The notes beneath the pieces are model-generated. The model was not told the DNA's origin. It saw only the letters and a program-made list of their open reading frames with translations, and ran no database searches. A stretch of DNA of 64,000 nucleotides, taken from the IMG/VR virus record IMGVR_UViG_3300046167_000825, positions 1 to 64,000 of that record; one strand, given 5' to 3'. The position numbers and the translations under genes were made by a program. Shown piece by piece: positions 8,223 through 61,151 of the stretch (its first letter is position 1; each line of letters starts with the position of its first letter).

Positions 8223-8339
8223 ATGACGGATGAACAAATAAAAAAAATAGATGCCCGAGTCAAAAAAGGCGAGGCAACCGAAGAAGACATTGAGATTCTT
8301 ACGGATTACTTCAAACTATTTATGGATGAACTAGGCTGA
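8223..8339 (+). CDS. 38-aa mini-ORF not in the ORF track (MTDEQIKKIDARVKKGEATEEDIEILTDYFKLFMDELG)
   Basis: Starts 1 bp after the actin stop; TGATG overlap with the next gene. Confidence 0.65.
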   Translation: MTDEQIKKIDARVKKGEATEEDIEILTDYFKLFMDELG

Positions 8340-18182: not shown

Positions 18183-18241
18183 GTTGGTATGCAAGTTCAA
18201 CTCAAAATGGTATAATGCTCAAAACTTCGGTGGAGGGTGTT

Positions 18242-36020: not shown

Positions 36021-39000
36021 ATGAGAAAACCACAAGTATATAAGCCCGATGGCGAACTAACTGACCAGTTCACATACAAGACGACAATCCCAGAGAAGTT
36101 CTTCTCTGGTTTGCTGCCTCCCAACACAGTCGATGTTCAAATCTCTATTCGTGGTGGGGCTTTTGTGTCCAATCCCGATCTCATTGTTTTTGAAGATAGA
36201 GCGTGGTCAGCCCCCAATCCCGAAGTCTACCCCAATGGGTTGGAGTTAATCGCGGGGGAGAACCACATCCAAATCAGAACAATCGGAACGAGAGGTGATA
36301 CCTCTGAGATTCTTGATATCAAAGTCACGCTCATCCAAGATGATTCTATTTATGCCCTCTCAAAACCACCCACCAATCTATCACTATCTCGTGAGAGAGA
36401 TACCGTCACAGTCACTTGTGAAGGTGTGGTTGACCCCAATGTCATAGGATACAACTTCTATGCTGCCACAGAGCAAGGTGGGGGTGGTGTGGGCTATTCT
36501 CGTATCAATCTCAATACCATCCGTTCGGGGGAAACCATTGAGGATTTCGTGGAACTCCAAGACATCTCTTTCTTAGAAGATGTGGCTACCCAAGATTCGG
36601 GTGACCCCTATTCCGACCCTCAGTATATTTCTGTCATCACGGAACAAAAAGATATTCTCGGGAATGTCTTCCAGAAGAAAGAAAGAGGGATAAAAGAAAT
36701 ACCAGAAGGCACGGAACAACTGAGAATTGCTTACAAGGTTAGTTCAGTTCGCACGACTTCCATGTATTCTTTCAAGCACAATAGATTATTCTCGGAGAAC
36801 TCAAACCCTCCTACAATCTTCAGTTCTGAGTTCACGTCAATCAGCCGTGAAGACTCCTTGTTCTATGTGGCAACGGCTTTGTTTTTCGATGACATCAACA
36901 GCATTGAGTACGAGAGTGTTTTTTCAGTGGAAGTTATTGGGAGTCCCTTATTGGTATCCCTTGTGGGGAGCAATCTCCCTCAAGTATCCCGAAATCAAAT
37001 CAGAGAGGATTTCATTTCGTCCGTGTATCGTTCCAATCCCCAACTCCGAGTCGATCCCACATCTGTTCTTTCAGACACCGTCATTGAACCCTTCTCATCA
37101 GAGATGGAGAGGATGCGATTCCTATTGGATTTCTTCAATAAAAGTTCATCCCTCGCTGGGTTATTGCAGATAGACGATCCCAATAACACGGGGCAGTCGG
37201 CTGACATCACAGCCTCTAATTATAAGCGTGCCATTCAGATTGCTTTCCGTATCGACAACTATGCAGACACCCAAGCCTTCATAGATTCGATCATTGAAGC
37301 GAGGGCAATGAACTTCGGTGTGACACGGAGAACCTCCACTCGTTCAAGTGGGGAGATAACTTTTTACGTCACGAAACAACCGACCTCTTCGGTGCAGATA
37401 CCATTGGGGACAGAAGTTTCTGGTGGGGGAGGCACATTCACTACGCTCCAACGGGGCGTTATAAATGTATCGAATATTGCCTCCTATTACAATCCAGCCT
37501 TGAAACGGTGGGAAGTGTCTATTCCAGTCCAAGCCAGCATTGGTGGTTCAAATGGTAATGTCGCACAAGGGCTAGTTCGGTCATCGAACTTGACGGGAGT
37601 TCAACTCACCAACAATGCTGCTTTCTTTGGGGGAGCAGACAGAGAAACCAACAGAGAGTTCATCACGAGAGCCATGAACGCTTTGGCGAGTCATGATGTC
37701 GGAACAGAAAGGGGCTTTCTTCAGTTAGCCGCTGACATCGTGGGAGTACAGAATCTTAAAGTGGTGGCATCGGGACACAATCTCATGCAACGAGATAAGG
37801 ATACTTCTGGTAACCATCGTGGTGGTAAAGTAGATATCTGGGTGCGTTCAGACAACCCCGCCATCGTGACGGATTCCTTTGCTTTCTCTTATTCTTTAGG
37901 GAAAGATGTGACTTTTGAGGTGGTTGGATCACCCACTGACTTAATCTTCAAGGCGATTGATTCTTCCTTGACGGAGGATGCCCCCATTCTGAGATTGCTC
38001 TCAGAAACCGATAGATTTGGTTTCCGTAATGGCTCGACTGGACAATCCTTTGATATCACGGGTGCAAAGGTCATTCAATACAACATGATACAACTCTCCA
38101 CTGAGATCAATCAACCCGATGTTTCTTACGGGGATGTCATTTTTGGGGACTATTATCGACAAGATGGCAATGACCATCTATTCACGAGGCAACCCGTTGA
38201 GTCCATCGTGACCGTAGAGGGAACAATTAGTGGTGTTCTCCCCACAACGGCATACGAGTTGGTCAATCCGAGTGTTCCTCTCGAAACGGGATTCTCTCTT
38301 AACGAAGGTTCTTATCTTCGCATTAAGGGTTTCACAGACGATGGTTCTCGTGTCCCTTCTGGTGATTCTTTGAGTGCCACTGACGAAACACATGTCATCT
38401 TATCGAACTACCCCGAATATCTCAATAATCTAGGGGCTGACCCTCTCACGGTCACGGTCACCAATCTTGAGAAGACTATCACTTATCGTTCTCCGAGTGA
38501 CCCAAGTGGTATATCGGATTTCACTGTCCAAGAGAGAGAGGGCTTTCCTTTGGCTGTTTTCTTGACGGACAACTCTGAGATACGCTCTGGACAAGAGATT
38601 TTGATTTCGTATTCTTACGGGGAGAACTTCACTGTAACCTACGGGATTTCATCTTCTATTTCCACGACACAGAACATCATCGACCTCAATAAACCTCTCA
38701 CGGCAGATGTCCTAGTGAAGAAAGCGTTGGCTGTTCCAGTGGATGTTGAGGCTACGATTGTTTTGAGCGTGGGGGCTAGTTCGGGAGTGGTTGACAACAA
38801 TATCCGAACGACTCTAGCAAACTTCTTTGCGACACTGACACTAGGCGACCCCGTTCGTCAAAGTGACCTCGTTGAAATAATGGACTCTACTCGTGGTGTT
38901 TCTTATGTCATTCTCCCTATAACAAGAATGACACGCCAAGAGGCAGCAATGGTTCTCCGTGAATCTTTAGTTGTGGGTTCTTTGTCTGATTACACCCCTC

Positions 39001-39512
39001 TCCCAAATGTGAGTGGTGTGGCAGATGTTTATCTCCTTCAAAATCAATTGGATTTCGTAGCCCAAGAGGGTGGTGGTTCAGAAGAAGATTTCAGAGGGGT
39101 TTTCCAAGATCAAGTCCTCCTCGAAACCTTATCACAACCCAACAACTATTATATCGGTTCTGGTGTGGGGAGAGCGTACATCATCGGTGACGGGGGCTTG
39201 TCTATTCAAGGGTTCAGTGATGACTTAACTCTTTCCAATGAAGGCTTCACACCCAATGAGTACGCCACAGTTCGGAAAGAGCGAACTGGGAATAGGGTTA
39301 TGATTTCCACACCCAAGAACAAATTACCAACAGAGTGTTCTTATTCTGTGACCTATTATGTGGGTTATGACAAGGCAGTCAAAAACATCGACCCCATTGA
39401 TGCTGAGTATCTAACTCTCGGAAATATCTCTCTCACATACGAAGAAGATTCGGCACAAGTCCGAACACTCCAGACGGGTTCTTCTTTGCGTAGTGGTGGG
39501 GGGTCGTACTGA
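36021..39512 (+). CDS. Baseplate J / gp6-like wedge protein with extra Ig/FN3 domains
   Basis: NFGVTRR..SSGEITF, GGSNGNVAQG, FFGGADRETNREF, GGKVDIWV, LGDPVRQSDL..GVSYV. Confidence 0.88.
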   Translation: MRKPQVYKPDGELTDQFTYKTTIPEKFFSGLLPPNTVDVQISIRGGAFVSNPDLIVFEDRAWSAPNPEVYPNGLELIAGENHIQIRTIGTRGDTSEILDIKVTLIQDDSIYALSKPPTNLSLSRERDTVTVTCEGVVDPNVIGYNFYAATEQGGGGVGYSRINLNTIRSGETIEDFVELQDISFLEDVATQDSGDPYSDPQYISVITEQKDILGNVFQKKERGIKEIPEGTEQLRIAYKVSSVRTTSMYSFKHNRLFSENSNPPTIFSSEFTSISREDSLFYVATALFFDDINSIEYESVFSVEVIGSPLLVSLVGSNLPQVSRNQIREDFISSVYRSNPQLRVDPTSVLSDTVIEPFSSEMERMRFLLDFFNKSSSLAGLLQIDDPNNTGQSADITASNYKRAIQIAFRIDNYADTQAFIDSIIEARAMNFGVTRRTSTRSSGEITFYVTKQPTSSVQIPLGTEVSGGGGTFTTLQRGVINVSNIASYYNPALKRWEVSIPVQASIGGSNGNVAQGLVRSSNLTGVQLTNNAAFFGGADRETNREFITRAMNALASHDVGTERGFLQLAADIVGVQNLKVVASGHNLMQRDKDTSGNHRGGKVDIWVRSDNPAIVTDSFAFSYSLGKDVTFEVVGSPTDLIFKAIDSSLTEDAPILRLLSETDRFGFRNGSTGQSFDITGAKVIQYNMIQLSTEINQPDVSYGDVIFGDYYRQDGNDHLFTRQPVESIVTVEGTISGVLPTTAYELVNPSVPLETGFSLNEGSYLRIKGFTDDGSRVPSGDSLSATDETHVILSNYPEYLNNLGADPLTVTVTNLEKTITYRSPSDPSGISDFTVQEREGFPLAVFLTDNSEIRSGQEILISYSYGENFTVTYGISSSISTTQNIIDLNKPLTADVLVKKALAVPVDVEATIVLSVGASSGVVDNNIRTTLANFFATLTLGDPVRQSDLVEIMDSTRGVSYVILPITRMTRQEAAMVLRESLVVGSLSDYTPLPNVSGVADVYLLQNQLDFVAQEGGGSEEDFRGVFQDQVLLETLSQPNNYYIGSGVGRAYIIGDGGLSIQGFSDDLTLSNEGFTPNEYATVRKERTGNRVMISTPKNKLPTECSYSVTYYVGYDKAVKNIDPIDAEYLTLGNISLTYEEDSAQVRTLQTGSSLRSGGGSY

Positions 39513-44262: not shown

Positions 44263-45960
44263 ATGAAAAATCTTGATAAAAAAACATTGATTCGTATGGC
44301 GTATGAAAAACCCGAAATGCGTTCAAAAATCTTGCCTCTCATCAAGAAGATGGCTCAGTTTCGCTTCATTCAAGATGGCGAACTAGACGGTTTGTCTAAC
44401 GCAGACATCGTTGAAATGGCAGAAGCGAAGTTCGGGAAAGCCTTCGACAAAGTTGATGTTGCTAGTATTCGGAAAGTGAATGGGAAAGTTCGTATAACGG
44501 CTTCCGTTCAAGTTGATATCGGTGCTGGTTCAAATGAAGTAGCAGAAATCGCTCGTGAATACGGGATAGGGATACTTGCTCCAACGGGTGCTACTCCAGA
44601 GATCCAACCGACAGAACAGTCTGTCGACATGGAAACCGTCCGTGACACCCCGTTCCCAACTCGTGAAACAGTCCGTAATGTCGTTGTGGTTTCTCCGAAT
44701 AGTTCAAACGACAGTGCTTCCAGCCGAGAAGACGAAGTTTCAAGAGCCAGAGGTCAAGTTTCTCGTGCCAATATCAGCATTTCTCCGAGAACCCGTACCC
44801 AGTTCCGAAATAAAGCGAGGAGTTTAGGGAACATCGTAGATTCTGTGCATCGTGGCACAAGTCATCCGTCACCAACTCACAGTGGTATGATTGATGGTGT
44901 TAAGATTTCCATTACAGTCGTAGGGAATACCCCCGAAGAAAGAGCCGCAGATGCTTACAAGAAGTTCCTTGAACTGAAAGGAAACTTCCCTAACGCTTCG
45001 TTGGTAACAGACTTCTACATTCAAGGGGATACCTTGTTCATCATTATTGCAGATGCACAAGTTCCAGAGGACACCTCTGCTATCGCTGAAGCCCGTAGTT
45101 CTTTCAATGCCTTCCAAAACATGAGTGGTGGCAGTTCTTCCTATGAAGAAGAATACTCTGAGGAAGAATACTCCGAAGAAGATGAAGTCAGTGGGCAACG
45201 TGAACGAGAGAGCATTCGAGAAGAAGAGATACGCCTAGAAAACGAGCGAAACGAACGGCTTGACAGAGAACGCCAAGAGCGACAACGTGAAATGGCGAGA
45301 GAACGAGCAGAGAGAGACCAACGAGCAGTTGAAGTCGCTCAAATGATGGCAGAACGCCAAGAAGCCCAGCAAGCACAATCTCCAGCACCAGCGAAGGGTG
45401 ATTATGTGATGAAAGACGGGTCAGCCATTCCGAACTCTGTTTTCGTGGCTGGTTATCTGAAAGGTATTGAGTATGCAAGACGAAATCGGGCAGTTCAAGA
45501 AAGATACGGTTTTGATCGTAATGGCAACCCCATCCCAGCAAATCAAATATATAAGTGGAATCATGACACTGCTAGTGGTTGGTTAAGACGATTGGCACGA
45601 GAACCCGAACTAGAACTCTCAAAAGCACAAGCCAGCACAATGAACTCGACACTGGGTTATAAAAAACCTAAGTCTCAGCGTAGTGGTATTGCTTCTCCTC
45701 ATATCCTCAAGGGTGTTTATGAGGCTGTCCGTGAATACTCAGATGTTGACTCTCGTTCTATCCCAAGCAAGACTTGGTTCATAAAGAACTTTGGTTTCGC
45801 TGATGGGTATCAAGGTCAGAACTCCACAGAAGCATACGCTCATTCTAATATGCGACAAAGCAGACAAGCCAATGACGAAACTCGTGCGAAGTTGATTCGA
45901 TTGGCATACGAGAAACCAGAACTCCGTTCCAAGATTCTTCCTTTGTTGAAAGAAGACTGA
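44263..45960 (+). CDS. Late protein bracketed by two copies of LIRxAYEKPExRSKILPLxK; acidic and ER-rich middle
   Basis: Terminal 20-aa repeats visible in the translation. Confidence 0.75.
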   Translation: MKNLDKKTLIRMAYEKPEMRSKILPLIKKMAQFRFIQDGELDGLSNADIVEMAEAKFGKAFDKVDVASIRKVNGKVRITASVQVDIGAGSNEVAEIAREYGIGILAPTGATPEIQPTEQSVDMETVRDTPFPTRETVRNVVVVSPNSSNDSASSREDEVSRARGQVSRANISISPRTRTQFRNKARSLGNIVDSVHRGTSHPSPTHSGMIDGVKISITVVGNTPEERAADAYKKFLELKGNFPNASLVTDFYIQGDTLFIIIADAQVPEDTSAIAEARSSFNAFQNMSGGSSSYEEEYSEEEYSEEDEVSGQRERESIREEEIRLENERNERLDRERQERQREMARERAERDQRAVEVAQMMAERQEAQQAQSPAPAKGDYVMKDGSAIPNSVFVAGYLKGIEYARRNRAVQERYGFDRNGNPIPANQIYKWNHDTASGWLRRLAREPELELSKAQASTMNSTLGYKKPKSQRSGIASPHILKGVYEAVREYSDVDSRSIPSKTWFIKNFGFADGYQGQNSTEAYAHSNMRQSRQANDETRAKLIRLAYEKPELRSKILPLLKED

Positions 45961-45961
45961 A

Positions 45962-46375
45962 ATGAAGAACTGGAAGCCCATATTCATTGAGAACTCACGG
46001 ATACCCGTTTGGTTGAGTAAATTGTCCCCTATCAATATAGGGGCAATCACTCTAGGTATCCTCGTGATATCCCGTGATGAGATGAGTGAGCAGACGAAGA
46101 ACCACGAAACGATACACTACCAACAGTATCTCGACTTGTTCTTCATTGGTTTCATTCCTCTCTATCTGTGGGATTGGGCTTTGGGTCTTTGGCATCACCG
46201 AAAGGGCAACATTGCTTACTACTCAATACGAGCAGAGCAAGAAGCCTATGTCAATGACACGAACATGAACTATCTCCAAGAACGGAAGAGATGGTCTTGG
46301 ATAAAGAACTACAAAGTGAAAACACCCCCCTATCTTGACACTTTGAAAGAAAACTTGGAGAAGAATAATGTCTAA
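45962..46375 (+). CDS. HExxH zinc-metallopeptidase-like membrane protein
   Basis: NHETIHYQQ, TM segment, AYYSIRAEQEAY. Confidence 0.7.
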   Translation: MKNWKPIFIENSRIPVWLSKLSPINIGAITLGILVISRDEMSEQTKNHETIHYQQYLDLFFIGFIPLYLWDWALGLWHHRKGNIAYYSIRAEQEAYVNDTNMNYLQERKRWSWIKNYKVKTPPYLDTLKENLEKNNV

Positions 46376-50801: not shown

Positions 50802-51024
50802 TACAGCCCCCTTTCTCGGCTTTCATCATTTTCTCACGGAGAGCCACGATCTTGGCTTCTTCTTCAATGATTTCTTTTTCAAAGAGAGTCTTCATGTCAG
50901 TGAACAAGGTGATCAACTGTTTGGCTTGAGGGATTTCTAGTTCCCCCTTCTCTTTCATCTGGTGTGGAACACCTTCAGTGACACCAAGTCGTTCTAGTAT
51001 CTCTTTCATTTCATCTTTTGTCAT
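50794..51024 (-). CDS. Small coiled-coil protein
   Basis: Overlaps both neighbours. Confidence 0.65.
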   Translation of the reverse strand: MTKDEMKEILERLGVTEGVPHQMKEKGELEIPQAKQLITLFTDMKTLFEKEIIEEEAKIVALREKMMKAEKGGCNG

Positions 51025-54000
51025 AGGTTCTCCACACTCTTTTTAATGTTGATTAATTCTTGTTCATCCTTCAAGTCCTTTTCGAGAATACCTCTCGCTC
51101 GATTTGCTGAAGGCAATGTCCCATTTGATTTGTTCGTTCGGAATGAAATCCATGTGTATCTCAAGTTTCTCAAGCGATCTGACGAATCAAGGATATCATC
51201 AAGTCTATCCACGAGATGTGGTCGACCAGAACCAGTCACCAACACTGTACCGTCACGCTCAAAAGAAGCGAAGGGGGTCGTGAGGGCTGGATCAAGAGGT
51301 GTTTCGTAGTCTAAGTTGTATTCCCCACACCAATATCTTCTGTCTTGGACAGAAAGACAATCAGAGGTGTTTAAGAAGGGGGACACATTACGAATACCAC
51401 CCAATGACTCCATGAGAGCATTAGACACCAAGCCGTATCCCCTACTTGTATCTGTGGGGTCATCTATCTCTAGGATGTGATCTTCCAATTGAAAAATGTG
51501 ATAACTCCCCGCTTTGTTTTTACGGGAGGGTTCAAGAATCTCTTCCATCCACGAGAGGGTTCTTTCTCTCTGAGTCAGAACTAGATCAATCATTTCCTCT
51601 GAGAATAAACCAGTCGGTCTGATAATCTTATAAGAAAACGGCTCAAGGGAAGAATATCCTTCCCACTCGTTAACGAGATCATAGGGGGCAGTAGGTCGGA
51701 GATCATTCTGTCCTTCATCCTCACCATCGGGTGACGGAGTGCTGGTCGGGAATGTGCCATTCATTGTTGGGTAAATGGCATACTCTTGCCCCACACTCCC
51801 AAAAGTAACGGGGTTGTCTGAACTCCCAGCGAACTCATTGAGAGGATTCACTTTCAATGATGTGCTGTTGTTTTCTTCGACACGATAGAAGCCACGATTG
51901 TCGTCTAGTTCGGAGGGTAAACCCTCGACAAAACCCGTTCTCCCAAAGACACCTCTATCGCCCATCGGTCGATAGCCTTCTGCATGTGGGTCTATTATGA
52001 TTAAATCCCCTTCTTGAACACCAACGAAGTCAGCACCCACGAGATTGTTCCGAACTACACATTGACCATCGTTCCCAGTCTTAATGACCTTTTTTGTCAT
52101 GATATCCAATAACTCATCCCATGATTGTTCATGGGGAATCATGCCTTGTCGGAGATAGATTTCAAAAGTGTAGTTCGTGGGATTGATTGCTAGGTCTTCC
52201 GTTAGGAACTCATCTCTAATTGAAACTTTATTGGGGAAACTTGAAGCCCCAGAGAGAATGTGTTCCTCTATCAACAACCCATCTTTCAAGATTCTTAAAG
52301 TATCCCCTCGATTCACACCAGAGAGACCCAGTACCCCAAAGAGATAGACATCACTCAGTTCTAAGGATCTATCAGACACATAAGAAACCACGCTACCTTT
52401 CCGTTTGAAATAGATAGGGGGGAGTAAATGCAAAGGCTCATTCAATTTATCTTGTATCTCGTGCCATCTTCTCACTCGTCTGACAGAGAACTTGACCTTT
52501 TCATAGAAGGCAAGAGTGTCAGACCCATTGGGATATGCAGTACTAACAGTGAAGTCACCTATGCTTCTCATCCCAACATTGGTGTCATCCATAGAAAGAC
52601 TGTTTGTCACCACTCGTGGCTCGGCTTCACCCAAGTCTTGAACTGGGATTGGTGTCGTGGGTTCAATGAAGATACCAGCGAGGTCTTTCTGCGTTATATC
52701 AAAGGTGTTTCCGTCTTTGATATAACCCTCACCATTGATAGGTAGCACCTCTGAGATATCTATATGAGAAGGCACACCCTCTGTGAACACTCGGTTCTCG
52801 CTGAAAGTACCATGTGTCGTGTTGATAGGGGCTTCAAAGACACCTATCTTGTTGGCAGCCGTTGCGTTCGCATTGAACTCCCCACCAGCAAATGTATAGG
52901 TTTGGCTACCAGTGTCATTAGTGATGATCAGTTCTTCAAGCCCCATTAAGGTTGTGGGATCGACCTCTTCGTACCCCCGAAGCATTTCCATAAAGTCGAA
53001 TCGTGTTGCACCAAAGGATTTAAGATTGGTTATCCCAGAAACATCTCCCATTGTGGTGGGGTTGCCATCTAGGGTTACAGTAGAAATTGTGAAGATACAC
53101 GAACCAAAACCGTTTATCACTTCAATTTCTGCGATGCTTGTATAAACGAACTCATAGACCTCAGTTTCTTTCTCCACGAAGATTGACCCCGTTGAGGGGA
53201 AGCAAGTTCGATTGCCATCTCCCGTGTCAAAGAAATCTCTCACACGGATATTTTTCAGTGTTATCGAGGTGAGGTCATGTGTCTCCACTTTGGCGAAGCC
53301 AGAATCTAAGGTGTTTTGTGTTCCGAAACGAATACCAGTCTTTGTTCTTTGTTCCCCATACGGATTGAGTGGGTCAGAGGGAGCAACCACATTCTTAATT
53401 ACATAAGACCCAGAGGTCACAGCCGTTTTGGTCAGAGATTGGATAACAAGAACATCGCCTTCCACTATGTTTTCTATAACCCCGTTGATGAGAGTCAGTG
53501 GGATGGCTGTGTAGGGGTTAACCATTGTTGTGTCTTGGTTTCCAATGTCTGAGGTGATAGCAAGGAAGCCGTCAGAAACATACCCCTCACCGTCACAGAT
53601 TATTGAAGTGGTGTTCTCATCTGAACTAGCCATAGCCGAGAAGCGAACTCCATTGATGTTCAAGGGAGTATTCTGAACACCCTCCCAAGACGGGACAGTA
53701 AAATCCTCTGTGAGGAAAGTGAACGGTGTCGCACCATTGATTGAGTTCGTTCCGTTTATGTAGGTCATGGGATAACCATCGCCAATATCAGAACCGTACT
53801 CATGTTCCACACGACCAACATACAAAGAGGTTTCAAGGACTAGACTATTGTCATTCGGATGGACGGTATCTCTGACAGTAGAGGCACAACCCCCCAAGCC
53901 CAAGTCATACTTCAAACGATCTGCACCGACAGTAGTCAGAAAAGAACCCGTGTAGGCTTCTTCATTCAGTGGTGTTCCGATACCACCCCAACTATCATCA

Positions 54001-57000
54001 AAGGCGTTCAGCCCCAATGTGAAGTCGAAGAAAACGGTATCATCTCCACCAATAGGTGTTCCAATGAGGGCAAAGTCAAACCAACCAATTCCTTGAACAC
54101 CGAGAACAACATTTGGAGTAGGATATGTCACGGGATCAACTGTATTCATATCCACGATGTCAATAATGATAGATGGACTTGAGTTCTGGGCTATTTTTTT
54201 ATCTACTGATACACCAACATTGAGTGTGTGGTGTAGTTCTAGTTCGGAGAGGATTGCACCAGTGGGGTGATCGATAAGAAGAAGACGGGCAGCATTTCTG
54301 TTTCCTTCTGGCACAGCAGTATCGACTGTCTGATTGAACCAAGAGATAAAACCCTCCCACGAGAATGTCGTTTGGGAAGATAAATCGAAAGTGGTGTAGT
54401 TATTGATGGCATCTTCAAGAATGACCATTCCGTTTTCTGCGTTTCCTAGTCCATCCACGACAGTGGACACATGAGCCATAGCGTTATCAACGATGTATTT
54501 ATCAAGAAGACCACTTTGTTCGGATACAAGACGAGGCACGCCTATGGTATTGCTCCCGACACTCCCAACAGAGAGAATCCCTTGCCAAGATTGTTCATTG
54601 GAATTAATTGGTTCAACCAATAATAGGTCGTATGATCTTACATCTGCAAGTCCAGTTCGGAGAGAGTAAGAGCCATTGACGGGTAGGAAGTTAACCGAGT
54701 CTGTTAAGAGGGCTTCACTTGTTAAGACTCCGTTTCTGCCGACAACTTCATTGGGATAGACGGCATTGTTATTTGAGAGGGCATCTTGGTCGAACAAGAA
54801 ATCAAAGGCTTTCGCCATCTGCCCTAGAACGGCTAGTTCGGTCTCACCCGATTTGAGATAAGGGAGTGTGTAATCCCCGCTGTCGTTTTTCTCTTGTCCA
54901 AGCAAACAAGGGAGTTTGGCTGGTTGCGTGTCCCCATTGTAGAAGAAGGTCACCCCTTCAAGACACTCATAAGGTTCTGGTGGGTTTTGGCTGAGTATCT
55001 TCTGCCAATCGAAACGGTCATCATCTTTTGAGGGGAAGGATTTATCAATCATTTGCCCCGATTTTCTATCGAGAGCGAAATCCCACCAAGTCGAATAGGC
55101 ATCGGACTTACCTTTCAGTTCGGCTTGTTCATCTAGGTCGGGGTCAGAAGGGGCGTTGGGCATGTAGTCATCTGTTCCGATGAATAAAGAATCTCCGAAT
55201 GAGATATCAATCTCCTCGAAAGTAGTTCGTATGAAGTCAGCCACATCCATGATGGCGTTCCCATCCTCATCTTGGAAAGTCAGAACACACCCAGCGATTA
55301 CTTCCTCGATATAAACATAAGTCGGATATATAACCCCATTTGGGTATCCCACAAAGACTTTATCCCCTTTATTGAAAGGAGGCGTGTGGAGGTCATAATC
55401 CCCCGAAGAAGCATCGTATATTTCCCCACCACCGATGACCATACGAGATGTGTCGGGGATTCCCTTTGAATCAGTGGGGAATTGATTGAGGGCGACAACC
55501 GAGATAACAACGGCGGGTCTTTCCCCAATAGTGATACTGAGGGCAGATTCGATTTCGGGGAAACCCGTGGGAGAATAATCATAAACTCTCCCTCTCGCTA
55601 AACGCTTCTGGATATCTAGATCAGAGATATTCTCTATTGTCCCTTGAACGGGATTACTGATCGCTCCGATTTGAGAACCTTTCGTGGAGTACCATTCCTC
55701 ATCAATCTCTCGTCCGTTGGTGAAGACACCGTAAGGATTATCCCCATCAATCAATGTCCCAGCATATGTCCTCGTGAACATATTAGTTCGCTCTGGGAAC
55801 AAACGACTGACAGTGTGATTATCCCCCATTGGTTTGTAAACACCCTTCGTCCAAAAACCTCTAGCCCAATCAAAGGACAGACCCTTTCGCCCAACCAGCA
55901 CGATGTCATCTATGTCATTCCTCGTGTAGGATTTCTGCTCGTTGAGAAAACTCCGTATCTCAGACATGTTGAGATCATCACCCTTCAAAACATAGTCGTC
56001 ACGACTAGCCCCACCATCGGGTTGTACAATAGCATCCTCAATCGTTAAAGGAATCCGAGTCAAACTCAGTTCCTCAAGAGTGTCATTAAAGAACTCCTCC
56101 CACACATTACGAGGGTTTAGGATACCCGTGAAAGGGTTCTCGTGTCCTTTAGGTGTGAGGTCATTGTCACGACCAACAAAGAACTTGAACTTGCCATCAC
56201 GGTCACCTATGAAACCACCCGTCACTGTTTCTCGTACTTGTTCAAACCCAACGATAATACGGTTGTAGACTTCTATAAACATCCGAGCCGCTTGATCTTG
56301 GTTGAGTGTGTCTTTATAAATGCCTCTACTTCCGAGTGACCCCTTCAAGAAGTTCTTGGGTGTGGTTGAGAAGCCCGTTCCAGAACCATTAGTTCCGTTG
56401 GGGTTCATATTCTGAGAGAAATCCTTTGCGACTTCTGCTAGATAGGCATCATTTTTGACAACACGAGTGAAGAAAGCATCGGGTTGACTGTAAAAGTAAT
56501 TACCCTCAATGAACCCTTTTGGGGTTCGGAGAGTGGAGTGGAGATAGGAGGCTCTGACATAGGGGACAACCACTTGTCCGTTTTGAAAGAAGGGGCTTAA
56601 AGCAGAAAGTGCTGTGCGAGACACCCACAAGACATCTCCTTTTTTTAATCCTCTCTGGAACTTATCCAAGAATCTTATATCCCCTTCTTCTGGGCTGCCT
56701 TCGTAATGGACATCCTCAATGAGTGTTTTACCAATGCCCCCCTCTTCAAATAGAACCAACTCAAAATAAGTGTCGGGAACAGAATCTCCCAGTTCAAACT
56801 CAAGGTCATTCTCAGCAAAGATGGGTCGGACAGACACTTTCGGTGGGTGCGTGTCGGGCTTGTACCCATTGGCTAACGGGCTTTGAAGTTTCACGAGAGT
56901 GAAATCCCCTTCGTCTGAGAGTTCCGTGTCCCCCACCAAGAAGACATCATCTCCGAGTTGGATGATACTATTCGTTTCAATGACTTCCGTCAGATTGCCC

Positions 57001-60000
57001 TCAAAGGTCAGTTCGGTCATTCCTCTGTCTGCTGGGAGATAAGAAACGAGGATATCCAACCAAAAGTCTAAGTCTTCAAACAGAGATTCACCACTCACCA
57101 ACATCTCGGAATCATTGGCTGGAGAAAGAGAACCTATTTCTTTTTGTGGTGCTGGAGAAATAACTATTTCAGTGCTTGTTGAGTTGTAGTTCGCTGCTTC
57201 GATTTTCAAGAGGAAGCCATCAATCCAAATCACACCACCCACCACAAAGTCCTCAGTTCGGTCGCCCTCAAGAAGAAAAGTGTCTTGTTCTTCTCGGAGT
57301 CGGAAAGGAGGTCGATAAATGGGATTATTTGAAGTGGTGTAGGATTGCTCCCCACCATCTGCTTCATACACTTGATAACTCGCTTTGAAAACATCACTGT
57401 ATAAAGGATTCCCAACAATGAAAGCCGTTCTGCCATCAAACATCAACTTATTGGTGACGGGGTCAATCTCAAAGGTGTACTCGTCAGTTTGTATTCTAGC
57501 CCCCACCCACAATGTAACCTCGCCATCTGCAATGAGAGTGTCATCTTCTAGATCAATCTCTGCCTTGAAGAAACCCGTCAGAGGGTCTATCTCAGTCACG
57601 GTTAGGTTTTTCTGTCTACGGAACACGGGGAGTTGATCGAAAACTTGAGGTAAGACAACCCCTTCCTCTGTCAGTTTCTCCCCGTCATCGTCTGCTCTAT
57701 AATATCTCGCTTCTACCACTGTTCCTTTCTTCAAGGGCTTCGTGAAGTTCAATGCCCCACCGATGGGATTCGCTTGAACATCTTGACCGAGAATCGCCCT
57801 CTGCACGAGATAGACTTTCCCAACTTGAGTTGCTGGAACAAATACCTCCCTAGAAGAATAATAGAACTCAGCGTGACCCAAGAGAGTGACATCACTGATG
57901 TCTGGCACAGCGTATGCCCTCCCACCGAGATTGTTCAGTGCCTCGTCAGAGAAGCGAACTTCCCCTTGAATGGGAGAACCCCAAGCACCGATTTCGATGT
58001 AATCCCCCGTGTTAGAAGAGAACACATTCACAAAGTGACAGTTTCCGTTACCTTTGGAGTATGAAACCTCACCCCCACCGAAGGAGATTTGAATGAACTC
58101 CCTCTCTAATAAAGGACTATCAATGACATACACACCATTTCTAGGATTTCCTAATAATTGTGACCCTATCTTGGTGGGAGTATAATCATTACTGTCGTCT
58201 GTTAAATCCCCCACACGGAAAAAGATATCACGACCATATTTCTCAGCATCACCAACATCTATAAAGAAAGCCCCACCACTCACAGAAGTTTCAACCAGTT
58301 CGACCAGTCGGATTATAAAACTCTCAGAGGGGAGATGGGATGTTGGATAAAGAATCTTATCAGCGTGAATAGATTTTGAATGACTACCAGAGAATATCTG
58401 ATAGTTCAAGTTCGATAAGTCCTCAGCGAACTGGGGATACACTTTGATTTTAGAGTTCAAGACCTCTTGAACAATGTAACTTCCTTCGAGGCTACCCCCA
58501 AGAATCTTCACTCTGTCTTTTGGGGACACCAGAGAAATCTGATTTGGATCTAGGGTTAGTTCATCCCCAACACTCACGCCATTGAAACCCTCAGCGATTT
58601 GCTCTCCTAGTGGTTCTATAATAGCCACTGTCCCCGTTTGCCCCTCGTCTAGTATGAGATAGTCCTCATCTTTCACTAGGGCGTTGAAAGTCGAACCATT
58701 TGAAACCCAGATGCCCTTATTGAAATAAGAATTGAAAGAACTCTCCACGACCATGTTAGGGGAAAGACTAATGAAGGGTGTTTCCGTTAGGACTTCGTTG
58801 ACTTGTGTGGACTCATCCACCCACATAAAGCGATTGTCATCGAACTGATAGATGATATCGTCATAATGGTGGAGGTCAGTTTGATTCAGACCCTCTCTAT
58901 AATTAAAGAAAACACCTTCACTGAAGCCTTTCATATCTTTCAGTGGTGTTTGGTCTAAATGGTGGAAGAAGTCTTGTCGGACATCCCCAATAAAACCCTC
59001 AGTCTTTTGTGTGGAATAAAAGTCCAGTTCATCTCCATCGGATTCTAAATCTTTATTGTAGGGGCTACGGAACAAACCGAAAGCCATCCCACTATCATTC
59101 AAGAAGCAAATATCCTCAGTGGTATCAACCACCCACCCAGCATTAAAACCAAGAACAGCACAACCCGATAGGTCACGGCTCTTATAAGGAAGGAGAACAC
59201 TGCCGTATTCTTTACTCCCAAAACCAATCTTGATACTCCCCGTTTTATCGGCTGTTTCCAAATATAACCGACCGTTGTAAGCCTTGAACAAACCCAAGCC
59301 CGTATCTAAAAGAGTCTCGCCTAGACTAGAAAATGAATAGGTATTCATTTTTAGGGCTGCCTCTTTTGCTGTAAGTGTTTCAGTGTAGTTCAGTTCGCAT
59401 ACGAACTTTGTGGTGTTAATCTCGAAAGAAAACACCATAGCACTGATTTCATACGGTTCTGATTTCCTAGACGGAATGGAAGCCTCATTGATTGTTCTTG
59501 CTGGAGTCACAAAGCCTTGTCGGAAGAAAACCCCATCGCCACTTTCTAACAGATTCTTTCTGTCCTTCGTATTGAAGCGAACCTCCCCATTCTCCAAACA
59601 GACCATCACAGTCCCCTTCTTAATTCTCCAAGCCCATCTCAAGTCCTTTTCTGAGGCGACAACTTCAAGTTGTTTGGTGGCGAAGGAACTAGAGAAAAAG
59701 ACCTCATCACCCACTGTCTTAATCCTACGAACTAACCCACTGCTAGATGGGAAGGGTTCGGCTGTGAGAGCATTGGGCAACAGACCCGTTCCATCTGGCA
59801 CTCTCAGAAAGCCCGATTGAAAAAGACCATTTGGTGTGGTGCTGGCATCCCCAAGAAAATAATCCTCTCCTTGAAGTGTGAGTTCGGTTGCCTTTGGGAA
59901 AAGAATGGGTTGAGTGTTGTGTGAAACACCATCATAGATGATGGCATCCTCGTAATACAAAACATCGAATAGATTGCTATCGGGATTTGCTTTTTGTAGT

Positions 60001-61151
60001 AAATCATCGTGGAACTTCACTCGACCAGTGCTTTCAGCCCAAGCGAAGGTTTTCTCATTGGGAAGAACTAGAGCATTGAGTTCGGTTTCATTCCGACACG
60101 CTATCGCTGTGAGATGTGTTCTGCTGCCCATCCGTAGCATCGGTCGATCAGTGTATTCTGGGATGGGGGCAAGGAACACGGGTGTGTCGAGAGTCTTCAG
60201 AAGCGAAGCCATCGCACCATCTGTTTCTTCTTGGAAATCATCGTAGGAATACCAAATGAACTTCCCAATATTAACTACCACAAAGTTTGGGTCAAAGACC
60301 AACTTGTTCCCATTCACACCAACAACGGCATCGGGAGTGTCTAGGTCAGATAAGAAATCATACTCTTCAATACCATCGTCATCAACCACCTTCACTTTCA
60401 ATACAGTTGCTGCCTCCGTTGGGAGAACACCCAACCTCAAGGTCGCTTTCACAGTGGGGTCGGAAGGGTCACCTTTAAGAAAAGACCCAATGTCTAAACC
60501 AATCTTCGGTGTGAGTTCGTAGGTTTCATCGGCAATCAATCGACCCAAGTTAATGATATTTGAGCCTTTATAAGGAAGCCAAGTCTGTTTTTCCCCATTC
60601 CATCCAAAACGAGTTTTGGTGTCATTCTTGACCCAATAGAACCCCATCTCTTTGAGGTAAGACTGATGTGAGAGAAACTGATAGTCATTCGTGAGTAATG
60701 TTTGTCCAGTGGTATTGATGTGGGCGTATGTGCCATCCCAAGTGAAATGAATGTCCTTTTGTAGTTCGGTGATAACTCCCCCCACCAAAAACTGAATGAC
60801 TTCCACCGATTCTATTTCTCTGCCTCTGCGGTTTATTACAAGAATCTTATTAAGAACAGCCCCCTCTTTGAATAACTGCGATTCAACACCTTGAACTAAA
60901 GCATTGGATTGAGATATCCGACCATTGTTCCCAGCCCACAGAAGATATTCCTCTGAGTTTTGACCCCCCTCAATGAAAGCACAACGATACTGACTCCCAA
61001 AGAGTTCTGTTAAGACAGTTTGATCGGAGTTCGACCATTCGTCAAAATGACGGACGACTCCACTGGTCGCAGTGGCTGTTGTTTCTGAGTTGCCAACACC
61101 ACTTCTTGAGGGTCGTAGGACAAAGCCCGATAAAATGTTCTGTATATTCAT
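51021..61151 (-). CDS. Giant (3376 aa) acidic virion structural protein, probably baseplate-associated
   Basis: 10.1-kb ORF with GAGG RBS, downstream of the spike gene; D/E/G-rich, beta-like. Confidence 0.75.
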   Translation of the reverse strand: MNIQNILSGFVLRPSRSGVGNSETTATATSGVVRHFDEWSNSDQTVLTELFGSQYRCAFIEGGQNSEEYLLWAGNNGRISQSNALVQGVESQLFKEGAVLNKILVINRRGREIESVEVIQFLVGGVITELQKDIHFTWDGTYAHINTTGQTLLTNDYQFLSHQSYLKEMGFYWVKNDTKTRFGWNGEKQTWLPYKGSNIINLGRLIADETYELTPKIGLDIGSFLKGDPSDPTVKATLRLGVLPTEAATVLKVKVVDDDGIEEYDFLSDLDTPDAVVGVNGNKLVFDPNFVVVNIGKFIWYSYDDFQEETDGAMASLLKTLDTPVFLAPIPEYTDRPMLRMGSRTHLTAIACRNETELNALVLPNEKTFAWAESTGRVKFHDDLLQKANPDSNLFDVLYYEDAIIYDGVSHNTQPILFPKATELTLQGEDYFLGDASTTPNGLFQSGFLRVPDGTGLLPNALTAEPFPSSSGLVRRIKTVGDEVFFSSSFATKQLEVVASEKDLRWAWRIKKGTVMVCLENGEVRFNTKDRKNLLESGDGVFFRQGFVTPARTINEASIPSRKSEPYEISAMVFSFEINTTKFVCELNYTETLTAKEAALKMNTYSFSSLGETLLDTGLGLFKAYNGRLYLETADKTGSIKIGFGSKEYGSVLLPYKSRDLSGCAVLGFNAGWVVDTTEDICFLNDSGMAFGLFRSPYNKDLESDGDELDFYSTQKTEGFIGDVRQDFFHHLDQTPLKDMKGFSEGVFFNYREGLNQTDLHHYDDIIYQFDDNRFMWVDESTQVNEVLTETPFISLSPNMVVESSFNSYFNKGIWVSNGSTFNALVKDEDYLILDEGQTGTVAIIEPLGEQIAEGFNGVSVGDELTLDPNQISLVSPKDRVKILGGSLEGSYIVQEVLNSKIKVYPQFAEDLSNLNYQIFSGSHSKSIHADKILYPTSHLPSESFIIRLVELVETSVSGGAFFIDVGDAEKYGRDIFFRVGDLTDDSNDYTPTKIGSQLLGNPRNGVYVIDSPLLEREFIQISFGGGEVSYSKGNGNCHFVNVFSSNTGDYIEIGAWGSPIQGEVRFSDEALNNLGGRAYAVPDISDVTLLGHAEFYYSSREVFVPATQVGKVYLVQRAILGQDVQANPIGGALNFTKPLKKGTVVEARYYRADDDGEKLTEEGVVLPQVFDQLPVFRRQKNLTVTEIDPLTGFFKAEIDLEDDTLIADGEVTLWVGARIQTDEYTFEIDPVTNKLMFDGRTAFIVGNPLYSDVFKASYQVYEADGGEQSYTTSNNPIYRPPFRLREEQDTFLLEGDRTEDFVVGGVIWIDGFLLKIEAANYNSTSTEIVISPAPQKEIGSLSPANDSEMLVSGESLFEDLDFWLDILVSYLPADRGMTELTFEGNLTEVIETNSIIQLGDDVFLVGDTELSDEGDFTLVKLQSPLANGYKPDTHPPKVSVRPIFAENDLEFELGDSVPDTYFELVLFEEGGIGKTLIEDVHYEGSPEEGDIRFLDKFQRGLKKGDVLWVSRTALSALSPFFQNGQVVVPYVRASYLHSTLRTPKGFIEGNYFYSQPDAFFTRVVKNDAYLAEVAKDFSQNMNPNGTNGSGTGFSTTPKNFLKGSLGSRGIYKDTLNQDQAARMFIEVYNRIIVGFEQVRETVTGGFIGDRDGKFKFFVGRDNDLTPKGHENPFTGILNPRNVWEEFFNDTLEELSLTRIPLTIEDAIVQPDGGASRDDYVLKGDDLNMSEIRSFLNEQKSYTRNDIDDIVLVGRKGLSFDWARGFWTKGVYKPMGDNHTVSRLFPERTNMFTRTYAGTLIDGDNPYGVFTNGREIDEEWYSTKGSQIGAISNPVQGTIENISDLDIQKRLARGRVYDYSPTGFPEIESALSITIGERPAVVISVVALNQFPTDSKGIPDTSRMVIGGGEIYDASSGDYDLHTPPFNKGDKVFVGYPNGVIYPTYVYIEEVIAGCVLTFQDEDGNAIMDVADFIRTTFEEIDISFGDSLFIGTDDYMPNAPSDPDLDEQAELKGKSDAYSTWWDFALDRKSGQMIDKSFPSKDDDRFDWQKILSQNPPEPYECLEGVTFFYNGDTQPAKLPCLLGQEKNDSGDYTLPYLKSGETELAVLGQMAKAFDFLFDQDALSNNNAVYPNEVVGRNGVLTSEALLTDSVNFLPVNGSYSLRTGLADVRSYDLLLVEPINSNEQSWQGILSVGSVGSNTIGVPRLVSEQSGLLDKYIVDNAMAHVSTVVDGLGNAENGMVILEDAINNYTTFDLSSQTTFSWEGFISWFNQTVDTAVPEGNRNAARLLLIDHPTGAILSELELHHTLNVGVSVDKKIAQNSSPSIIIDIVDMNTVDPVTYPTPNVVLGVQGIGWFDFALIGTPIGGDDTVFFDFTLGLNAFDDSWGGIGTPLNEEAYTGSFLTTVGADRLKYDLGLGGCASTVRDTVHPNDNSLVLETSLYVGRVEHEYGSDIGDGYPMTYINGTNSINGATPFTFLTEDFTVPSWEGVQNTPLNINGVRFSAMASSDENTTSIICDGEGYVSDGFLAITSDIGNQDTTMVNPYTAIPLTLINGVIENIVEGDVLVIQSLTKTAVTSGSYVIKNVVAPSDPLNPYGEQRTKTGIRFGTQNTLDSGFAKVETHDLTSITLKNIRVRDFFDTGDGNRTCFPSTGSIFVEKETEVYEFVYTSIAEIEVINGFGSCIFTISTVTLDGNPTTMGDVSGITNLKSFGATRFDFMEMLRGYEEVDPTTLMGLEELIITNDTGSQTYTFAGGEFNANATAANKIGVFEAPINTTHGTFSENRVFTEGVPSHIDISEVLPINGEGYIKDGNTFDITQKDLAGIFIEPTTPIPVQDLGEAEPRVVTNSLSMDDTNVGMRSIGDFTVSTAYPNGSDTLAFYEKVKFSVRRVRRWHEIQDKLNEPLHLLPPIYFKRKGSVVSYVSDRSLELSDVYLFGVLGLSGVNRGDTLRILKDGLLIEEHILSGASSFPNKVSIRDEFLTEDLAINPTNYTFEIYLRQGMIPHEQSWDELLDIMTKKVIKTGNDGQCVVRNNLVGADFVGVQEGDLIIIDPHAEGYRPMGDRGVFGRTGFVEGLPSELDDNRGFYRVEENNSTSLKVNPLNEFAGSSDNPVTFGSVGQEYAIYPTMNGTFPTSTPSPDGEDEGQNDLRPTAPYDLVNEWEGYSSLEPFSYKIIRPTGLFSEEMIDLVLTQRERTLSWMEEILEPSRKNKAGSYHIFQLEDHILEIDDPTDTSRGYGLVSNALMESLGGIRNVSPFLNTSDCLSVQDRRYWCGEYNLDYETPLDPALTTPFASFERDGTVLVTGSGRPHLVDRLDDILDSSDRLRNLRYTWISFRTNKSNGTLPSANRARGILEKDLKDEQELINIKKSVENL

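Follow-up and report, generated by a model that had tools for sequence, protein, structure and literature searches.

Several systems are known in which a short peptide directs otherwise unrelated proteins to a protein shell. In phage T4 a capsid targeting sequence of about 10 residues, followed by an L/I-x-E cleavage site, is shared by several unrelated proteins of one proteome and is thought to address them to the prohead core, and N-terminal propeptides of giant-phage head proteins (phiKZ, SPN3US) are viewed in the same way, with cleavage in SPN3US after a motif ending in E (PMC10052503). In P22-type phages a small amphipathic helix-loop-helix of about 30 residues with exposed basic residues, at the C terminus of the scaffolding protein encoded beside the coat gene, binds the coat protein, and the HK97 protease carries a C-terminal encapsidation tail; such small amphipathic hairpins or tails with conserved basic residues dock a protein to the inner capsid lattice. 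In cells, the encapsulation peptides of bacterial microcompartments and the cargo-loading peptides of encapsulins occur at either terminus of diverse cargo, separated from it by flexible linkers. The polyvalent proteins of phages and conjugative elements are built from shuffled modules and are predicted to be packaged, and sometimes processed by zincin-like peptidases (Iyer et al. 2017, PMC5512222). Here we describe a peptide of about 23 residues, found at both ends of one phage protein and on thousands of others, which most likely acts as an address label of this general kind, although its destination is inferred from circumstantial evidence.

Two copies of one peptide in a 565-residue protein

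The window analyzed comprises 64,000 nucleotides, positions 1 to 64,000 of IMG/VR record IMGVR_UViG_3300046167_000825, a 289-kb genome referred to below as G000. An open reading frame at 44263-45960 (+) encodes 565 residues (P0001) and lies at the 3′ end of a late structural operon defined by a baseplate J-like gene at 36021-39512 (+) (PF04865, E = 8.6e-21; phrog_6, E = 2.8e-27). It is syntenic after Baseplate_J in three other contigs. The preliminary description reported near-identical terminal repeats in this protein, together with an interior sequence and a helix rich in Glu and Arg, and this observation is confirmed, as both terminal peptides and the interior EEEYSEEEYSEE (residues 295-306) are present exactly as given. 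In the 20-residue core, residues 9-28 against residues 544-563, 17 positions are identical, six through the same codon and 11 through synonymous codons, and the three replacements are M/L, M/L and I/L. DNA identity over the 69 aligned bases is only 44/69 (64%). In 300 shuffles of the protein the best match of a 20-residue window never exceeded 9/20.

The similarity is therefore kept at the protein level, as the preliminary description had proposed from the differing codons. Recent intragenic duplication or gene conversion can be rejected, because synonymous sites differ and because 27 tags on unrelated foreign proteins are closer to the C-terminal copy than is the protein's own N-terminal copy. 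An assembly artefact is ruled out by the presence of the same gene on independent contigs. Both copies are conserved in 12-13 orthologues from independent metagenomes. The N-terminal copy (44275-44355, +; residues 5-31; HMM domain E = 1e-16) is retained mostly as the variant ..KILGLI.., and the C-terminal copy (45877-45957, +; residues 539-565; E = 3e-16) is nearly invariant across orthologues whose overall identity is 63-95%. The terminal position itself is not the conserved feature, since in about half of the orthologues the second copy is followed by unrelated extensions of 60-110 residues.

The AF2 model of P0001 had a mean pLDDT of only 55 but places helices at residues 3-15 and 17-26, so that the N-terminal tag is predicted to be a helix-break-helix. 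Between the tags we distinguish a small α/β domain (44350-44595, +; residues ~30-110), ferredoxin/ACT-like in a low confidence model (pLDDT 41-54) whose best structural matches have Z 6.8, within the generic range; the acidic EEEYSEEEYSEE stretch and the long Glu/Arg-rich helix that follows it (45145-45378, +; residues 295-372), predicted as a single helix at 315-370, which form a linker that is hypervariable in length and sequence among orthologues; and a conserved helical C-terminal domain (45394-45843, +; residues 378-527; pLDDT 70-85), which is 76% identical to protein P0029 and is an orphan fold without a match in PDB or BFVD. Structural searches with the whole model against PDB representatives and BFVD returned only generic ferredoxin-like and coiled-coil matches, a profile search of PDB was empty, and searches of Pfam, PHROG and NCBIfam gave no match. 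Against GenBank phages, tblastn and megablast searches with P0001 and its operon found nothing. The gene is translationally coupled to one at 45962-46375 (+) for a 137-residue HExxH protein (phrog_15610, "protease", E = 1.5e-22), which is 88-96% identical in relatives and always abuts or overlaps the stop codon of the P0001 orthologue, although a role for it in processing P0001 is pure inference.

A portable peptide in uncultured giant phages

To investigate whether the peptide is private to P0001, a condition under which the preliminary description would have had to be abandoned, we built a profile of the copies and searched the genome and public metagenomes. The peptide is not restricted to P0001. 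G000 holds 6 copies in 5 open reading frames, one of the carriers lying at 276050-276628 and the next-best hit having E = 0.38, and related phage records of 200-485 kb hold 7-16, as counted in five large relatives (G001-G005). Among 1.84e9 representative proteins the profile finds 3,524 clusters at E ≤ 1e-3 and 365 at E ≤ 1e-10, with 1-7 copies each, on domains that are mostly unrelated orphans. The consensus is LR..LIRLA[HY].[NK]PELR..LLPLLK.A, in its extended form preceded by (K-x-A)-S, giving a module of ~23-27 residues. An all-against-all BLAST of the genome found no other shared terminal peptide that might bear on the suggestion that this is a second class of tag.

About two thirds of copies are N-terminal and the rest are internal or C-terminal. 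Of 336 instances, 108 are N-terminal, 174 internal and 54 C-terminal, and in a less biased IMG/VR sample of 120 pattern matches (a few of them not genuine tags) 72 copies start within 12 residues of an ATG and only about 8% of tags are C-terminal. The peptide is nearly absent from cellular genomes, where a degenerate DNA pattern gave one genuine hit in 185,579 species genomes, so that mimicry of a host motif was rejected, and in GenBank phages it was found in one record, itself uncultured, so that no cultured phage is seen to carry the tag. Searches of Pfam, PHROG, NCBIfam and PDB sequences found no entry covering the tag, PDB returning only designed helical repeats at chance level, and word searches of the literature for motif fragments and for capsid targeting in huge phages found no description of it.

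The position on several unrelated proteins of one phage, 5-16 per genome, and the predominance of N-terminal copies in the IMG/VR sample resemble the T4 capsid targeting sequence and the giant-phage propeptides. There is, however, no sequence similarity to these, the tag is longer, is also found internally and at C termini in up to seven copies, and is flanked at most by a weak K-x-A. The residues after the tag are K (41%)-x-A (33%), with no conserved motif ending in E, and no canonical prohead protease site such as x-x-E adjoins it. The preliminary description had proposed that both ends of P0001 are trimmed at KMA and RQA. The K-x-A flanks are only moderately conserved family-wide (Lys 38-41%, Ala 33-38%) and the small residue before Leu-Arg is equally explained as a helix N-cap, so this reading is not supported by the present analysis. 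From the polyvalent proteins the carriers differ in that the defining element is a repeated short tag and not a set of enzymatic domains: a Pfam scan of 120 of the 150 listed carriers detected no polyvalent-protein domain (LPD families, MuF, MPTase), and the HExxH protein is a separate neighboring gene and not an in-chain peptidase.

Could the peptide be merely a structural helical cap or linker, or a recombination junction that eases domain shuffling, without a specific partner? Unrelated C-terminal extensions are swapped directly after the second tag in P0001 orthologues, and tags sit at fusion junctions in multidomain proteins. However, the DNA of the copies is not conserved (64%), so the tag cannot drive homologous recombination, and near-invariance of about 15 residues across thousands of unrelated proteins is far more than a linker needs. 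We regard this explanation as improbable.

A second possibility is that tags bind each other, hairpin to hairpin, as four-helix bundles, so that tagged proteins self-assemble into a network or condensate with P0001 as a bivalent linker. Each helix has a wide hydrophobic face with the pattern i, i+4, i+5, i+7, i+8, natural proteins exist that consist only of 2-4 tags joined by low-complexity linkers, and a natural 63-residue protein made of two tags only is predicted as a compact four-helix unit (pLDDT 85, pTM 0.63) with no PDB match. Single-sequence AF2 nevertheless favors idealized helices in general, and most carriers have a single tag, which could only dimerize. A complex prediction of P0001 residues 1-40 against residues 526-565, run without controls, gave an ipSAE of 0.02, which lends no support to tag-tag binding and is also no evidence against it. 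Self-association remains doubtful, and the earlier proposal that a bivalent tag cross-links the prohead core is likewise not supported by this prediction.

Genomic context and candidate docking partners

To investigate where tagged proteins might be directed, we examined the positions of their genes. Pfam models for HK97 capsid, Gp23, Peptidase_S77 and Terminase_6C found nothing in G000, and the capsid gene (G000 257761-258672) and the protease gene (G000 254451-255863) were reached only through PHROG families (the phrog_2522 capsid and phrog_18299 protease) first identified in G002, a complete 437-kb relative. In G000, scaffold-like proteins are encoded at 255897-256925 and 253128-253853 and a 216-residue protein at 257139-257789. 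In G002, 12 of 16 tag matches fall in a 30-kb block (6.7% of the genome) that holds TerL, portal, head maturation protease and major head protein. G001 has a tagged gene between the scaffold-like gene and the capsid gene, and G003-G005 each have one 2-6 kb from the capsid gene. Outside G002, however, tagged genes are not enriched near the capsid gene, with 0-2 within 15 kb, about what chance gives. In G000 three carriers lie among non-structural genes (GroEL, a putative methyltransferase identified only by reading its sequence, and VWA), and P0001 itself is in the baseplate operon and not in the head module.

Two further resemblances point to the head. The 981-residue head-module protein of G000 and the ~200-residue scaffold-like proteins next to the protease share two other mini-modules with 10-17 of the 150 multi-tag proteins (E down to 8e-16), although this could reflect general module shuffling. 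In addition, all nine main-lineage prohead proteases examined end in a conserved ..[LM][IVA]RLA.L[LI].. helix like the first helix of the tag, and in the 89,709-residue G000 proteome the stricter pattern [LM][IV]RLA occurs only in tags and in that tail. This resemblance covers only 5-7 residues and was noticed post hoc, and about 0.4 chance occurrences of the pentapeptide are expected per proteome. The capsid protein is 86-87% identical among the four main-lineage genomes compared (G000, G001, G003 and G004), which fits a receptor conserved enough to hold the tag nearly invariant.

In its predicted helix-break-helix and its conserved basic residues (Arg at −3, +2 and +11 and Lys at +19), the tag resembles the P22-type coat-binding element, and, as a parallel to the HK97 tail, the prohead protease tail resembles the tag's first helix. 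Those elements are single, C-terminal and belong to one scaffold or protease, and there is no sequence relation, whereas this tag is proteome-wide, mostly N-terminal and spread over thousands of cargo types, and the scaffold-like genes of G000-G004 have no tag by HMM. Any binding of the tag to coat protein is inferred by analogy only. Compared with the encapsulation peptides of microcompartments and encapsulins, which are cellular, poorly conserved in sequence and have their shell genes next to the cargo, the tag is nearly invariant, phage-restricted and dispersed over the genome.

The scattered positions leave room for a different common hub, such as a phage replication or assembly factory, a tail or baseplate assembly platform or a universally conserved host machine, with the head-module signals incidental. 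Most tagged genes in G000, G001 and G003-G005 lie among non-structural genes, P0001 is in the baseplate operon, a few cargo domains look like regulators or effectors (WGR, RelA_SpoT, Zn ribbons, TFIIS_M), and the tag tolerates N-terminal, internal and C-terminal positions. Against this, no candidate hub was identified, the clustering in G002, the shared modules and the protease tail would all need another explanation, and a host hub is unlikely to be mimicked given the near absence of the motif from cellular genomes. We consider this unlikely, though it is the strongest of the alternatives.

The phage-encoded GroEL-type chaperonin is a specific candidate, as the N terminus of the T4 head protein is reported to direct proteins to GroEL (Snyder and Tarkowski 2005, as listed in PMC10052503). 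GroEL is present in 6 of 6 large tag-bearing genomes and in 4 of 14 fragments, close to the 4.7 expected from their completeness, and a tagged gene lies next to GroEL in G000 (GroEL at 171258-172796), G003 and a further record, G019. GroEL may, however, simply be a core gene of the clade, multi-tag low-complexity proteins and C-terminal tags make little sense as folding signals, and chaperonin substrates do not normally need an invariant 23-residue peptide. Recruitment of the chaperonin is therefore very unlikely on present evidence.

A putative address tag for the prohead

Taken together, the data are tentatively explained by a portable module that a clade of uncultured ~400-500-kb myovirus-like megaphages attaches to 5-16 otherwise unrelated proteins per genome, and that would bind one common, highly conserved phage-encoded receptor. 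The leading candidate for the destination is the interior of the assembling prohead (scaffold/capsid-protein lattice), where tagged proteins would be loaded as internal or ejected head proteins using the same docking site as the tag-like tail of the prohead protease, and P0001 would be a two-tag cargo or tether. Our analysis establishes that the module exists, is under protein-level selection, is independent of position, is virus-restricted and is present in several copies per proteome; that it binds a receptor, that this receptor is in the prohead, and whether the tag is removed by proteolysis are matters of inference. The interpretation in the preliminary description is thus partly supported, in that the peptide is a portable tag used on many proteins, while its association with the prohead is plausible but unproven. 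No description of this tag was found in the literature searches.

A bolder possibility, which we consider unlikely but cannot exclude, is that the tag is the address code of a general cargo-loading system of ~450-kb megaphage capsids, in which diverse effector and structural proteins, and multi-tag low-complexity "matrix" proteins, dock through the same helix-break-helix to the site used by the protease tail and together build an internal protein body. In that case the packaged and injected proteome of uncultured megaphages could be read directly from sequence, and the tag could be used to load foreign cargo.

Megaphages of 400-500 kb are known almost only from metagenomes, and most of their proteins have no assigned function. 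A near-invariant peptide that marks 5-16 proteins per genome, and over 3,500 protein clusters in all, gives a sequence-only handle for grouping these orphan proteins by destination. If that destination is the capsid interior, the tag predicts which proteins are packaged and injected, would also explain how very large capsids recruit an internal proteome, and would offer a compact natural tag for cargo loading. Even if the receptor proves to be something else, the tag defines a previously uncatalogued interaction module, readily amenable to study with peptides.

Genomic setting and the repeated peptide of P0001

The 289,014-bp IMG/VR virus record from which the window is taken (genome G000) is linear, has a GC content of 44.7%, and is rated 66% complete by CheckV, so the full genome is probably ~440 kb. 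The window holds a myovirus tail and baseplate region comprising a 1,585-aa sheath-related ORF, a tape-measure-like ORF, a Baseplate_J gene at 36021-39512, and a tail-terminator-like gene at 8339-9526. The sheath-related ORF (13362-18119, plus strand) is unusually long, the sheath match covering only aa 1183-1581, and it shares an ~80-aa segment with a 465-aa ORF upstream (4735-6132, plus strand). A 513-aa ORF at 18215-19756 (plus strand), which combines a ROS/MucR-type zinc-finger region with an HNH-like homing-endonuclease region, sits between the sheath gene and the downstream tail genes. The gene of interest lies at the 3' end of the long plus-strand operon that follows the baseplate genes. 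Just downstream of this operon, a giant ORF of 3,376 aa is found on the opposite strand (51021-61151, minus strand), and a homologue of ~3,281 aa occupies the same place in a related contig (L003).

The ORF at 44263-45960 encodes a protein of 565 aa (P0001), and every sequence string reported for it in the preliminary description is present, so that the observation of a matching peptide near its two ends holds. In the 20-residue cores (aa 9-28 and 544-563) 17 residues are identical, of which only six use the same codon and eleven differ synonymously, and DNA identity over the 69 aligned bases is 64%. Shuffled versions of the protein never exceed 9/20. The repeat is therefore real, old at the DNA level, and held by selection on the peptide.

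Thirteen orthologues from independent metagenomes keep both copies, and the second copy is almost invariant while overall identity is 63-95%. In about half of these orthologues the second copy is followed by unrelated extensions of 60-110 aa, and at least three unrelated types are seen in columns 640-775 of the orthologue alignment, which suggests module exchange exactly at the tag boundary. The conserved architecture is thus tag, core, tag, and an optional further module, rather than strictly terminal brackets.

The P0001 gene is followed by a gene for a 137-aa protein (45962-46375, plus strand; phrog_15610 "protease") with an HETIH (HExxH) motif, a downstream conserved E, and a hydrophobic segment. 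This protein is far more conserved (88-96%) than P0001, and in three other contigs its start abuts or overlaps the stop of the P0001 orthologue, as it does for every orthologue examined. It is an obvious candidate for processing or assembly of P0001, although this role is inferred from gene arrangement and sequence alone.

The peptide family and its distribution

To determine whether the peptide is private to P0001, we searched the genome with a profile of the copies and found six copies in five ORFs. These are P0001 itself with two copies, a 153-aa protein and a 192-aa protein each with the tag at the N-terminus, a 408-aa protein with an internal tag directly downstream of a phage GroEL, and a 211-aa protein with the tag at the C-terminus. 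The next-best hit in the genome has E=0.38. Against 1.84 billion representative proteins the same 35-position profile finds 3,524 proteins at E<=1e-3 and 365 at E<=1e-10, and the best 150 of these, which were the ones inspected and are biased towards multi-copy proteins, carry 2-7 copies each.

Across 336 instances the consensus is S-L-R-x-x-L-I-R-L-A-[HY]-x-[NK]-P-E-L-R-x-x-L-L-P-L-L-K, with the most conserved positions being L 87%, R 79%, I 81%, R 81%, L 87%, A 99%, P 95%, R 97%, L 91% and P 89%. The flanks are weaker, with K-x-A-S before the tag (38-41%) and K-x-A after it (33-41%). The C-terminal copy of P0001 is closer to 27 tags on unrelated foreign proteins than to its own N-terminal copy, and the two ends therefore resemble each other because both conform to a family consensus. 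Given the non-conserved DNA and the near-invariant peptide, a pure linker or recombination-junction role is unlikely.

A scan of IMG/VR returned 73 loci, mostly on large fragments and with several per contig. Five large relatives hold 7-16 copies each, among them a complete 437-kb genome with terminal repeats (G002) and a 485-kb genome (G001). In the IMG/VR sample, which is not biased towards multi-copy proteins, 72 of 120 pattern matches (a few of them not genuine tags) lie within 12 residues of an ATG and typically begin M-S/T-x-L-R, whereas eight are C-terminal and the rest are internal or ambiguous. A degenerate DNA pattern gave eight hits over 596 Gb of cellular genomes, of which only one was genuine, on a MAG contig. 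The only GenBank phage record with the tag is an uncultured 485-kb genome, and all proteins that were looked up are unnamed metagenomic sequences. Pfam, PHROG, NCBIfam and PDB hold nothing that covers the tag, and word searches of the literature found no description of it.

The tagged proteins of other lineages, seen among the 150 metagenomic carriers (P0002-P0151), are mosaics of further short conserved modules, for example GCEKLPEGPMRDNCEKK, GEFTEQEWKTH..HPNADPK.HT, NPDTG..V and AKPETKERMK, joined by K/E/G-rich linkers. None of these four modules occurs in G000.

Predicted structure of the tag and its carriers

AlphaFold2 modeling on the orthologue alignment gives a poor overall model of P0001 (mean pLDDT 55), in which both tags come out as helix-break-helix with the break at K/N-P (helices 3-15/17-26 and 522-550/552-561). 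The hydrophobic residues of each helix follow the same i, i+4, i+5, i+7, i+8 pattern, a face that is too wide to be satisfied within a two-helix hairpin, which argues for a partner. The small residue before L-R (S, T, N or D) is what a helix N-cap would be, and this is an alternative to reading the K-x-A-S junction as a protease site. The rest of P0001 consists of a small alpha/beta domain, a disordered S-rich linker, a second alpha/beta unit, the acidic EEEYSEEEYSEE stretch with a hypervariable E/R helix, and a conserved helical domain, none of which has a recognisable relative.

A natural 63-aa protein made of two tags and nothing else is predicted as four helices with pLDDT 85 and pTM 0.63. 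This prediction, together with the existence of proteins made only of tags, suggests that the tags might associate homotypically, although the only trans test of such pairing gave no answer.

Evidence bearing on the phage head and on alternative destinations

To investigate what the tag might be for, we sought the head module, which could not be found with Pfam models but emerged from G002 (57% GC). There, PHROG scans identify a terminase large subunit, a portal, a head maturation protease (phrog_18299) and a major head protein (phrog_2522, E=5e-51) in one minus-strand block. Twelve of the sixteen tag matches of that genome lie in the same 30 kb (216.7-246.1 kb, loci L079 and L080; 6.7% of the genome), as N-terminal tags of the divergent variant form LIRLGNANPELR..LKPVIAHL on small proteins whose genes are interleaved with the terminase, portal, protease and capsid genes. 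The same capsid and protease families are present in all ten tag-bearing genomes tested, and in G000 they lie at 257761-258672 and 254451-255863, respectively. The capsid proteins are 86-87% identical among G000, G001 and two further large relatives, G003 and G004.

Gene calls in all relatives are simple ORF calls. In the main lineage, G001 has a tagged 134-aa gene inserted between the scaffold-like gene and the capsid gene, and G003, G004 and G005 each have one tagged gene 2-6 kb from the capsid gene. Overall, however, tags are not enriched near the capsid gene outside G002. The G000 carrier at 276 kb precedes a 305-aa gene, and the 50%-identical G002 orthologue of that gene sits inside the head block and is again preceded by a tagged gene. 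Beside the tagged gene at 276 kb in G000 lie two tandem paralogues of 427 and 499 aa (277704-280483; L002:9705-12484), which are built of repeated CxxC zinc-ribbon units and resemble homing-endonuclease-type insertions, and G005 has a gene that, judged from its sequence only, is probably homing-endonuclease-like right after its capsid gene (L054:792-1715).

Tagged proteins also share other mini-modules with proteins of the head module. The first gene of the G000 head module (250119-253064, plus strand) encodes 981 aa, and its C-terminal ~55 aa match 10 of the 150 multi-tag proteins (up to 74% identity, E=8e-16), while its N-terminal part contains motifs (..TGKSGV.H.. and ..ITAKDMRGYHAN..) that, on inspection of the sequence alone, are reminiscent of type IB topoisomerase. 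The ~200-aa acidic scaffold-like proteins next to the protease in G003 and G004 share an FDP..PGP..PFM.G.FTQ module with 15-17 of the 150 (E down to 6e-13). In addition, all nine main-lineage prohead proteases examined end in a conserved helix ..E-A-R-T-[LM]-[IVA]-R-L-A-x-L-[LI].., and in the whole G000 proteome the stricter pentapeptide [LM][IV]RLA occurs only in three tags and in that tail. As about 0.4 chance occurrences are expected per proteome, this resemblance is a lead and not proof. C-terminal protease tails act as encapsidation signals in HK97-type systems.

Against a destination in the head, most tagged genes of G000 and its close relatives are scattered among non-structural genes, and P0001 itself belongs to the baseplate operon. 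A receptor outside the head remains quite possible. One alternative is the phage chaperonin. In G000 the GroEL-type gene (171258-172796) is immediately followed by the gene for the 408-aa protein with the internal tag (172840-174066; both within L001:7259-10067), with a Peptidase_C39-like gene, a VWA/CobT-like gene and an HATPase_c-like gene nearby. A phage GroEL is present in all six large genomes and in 4 of 14 fragments, where 4.7 would be expected from their completeness, and a tagged gene sits beside GroEL in three genomes. There is also a reported T4 precedent for an N-terminal peptide that directs proteins to GroEL (reference list of PMC10052503). We nevertheless consider chaperonin recruitment unlikely, because multi-tag low-complexity proteins and C-terminal tags do not fit a folding signal.

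The interpretation offered in the preliminary description is supported in part. Its reading of the peptide as a tag is right, and the family is much larger than could have been known from the one sequence. Its suggestion that P0001 is a bivalent cross-linker of the prohead core is a reasonable corollary, but one that is hypothetical on present evidence. Its proposal that both ends are trimmed at KMA and RQA has no direct support; the K-x-A flanks recur family-wide at only ~35-40%, without a protease of known specificity.

The sequence comparisons themselves establish that the repeat exists, that selection acts on the peptide, and that the tag recurs across a large family of proteins, whereas binding to a partner, delivery to the head, cross-linking and trimming are inferred. 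Taken together, the clustering in G002, the shared capsid and protease families, the tagged genes close to the capsid gene, the conserved gene pair, the shared mini-modules and the protease tail make prohead targeting the best single reading of the tag, although we hold it only tentatively, at somewhat less than even likelihood.
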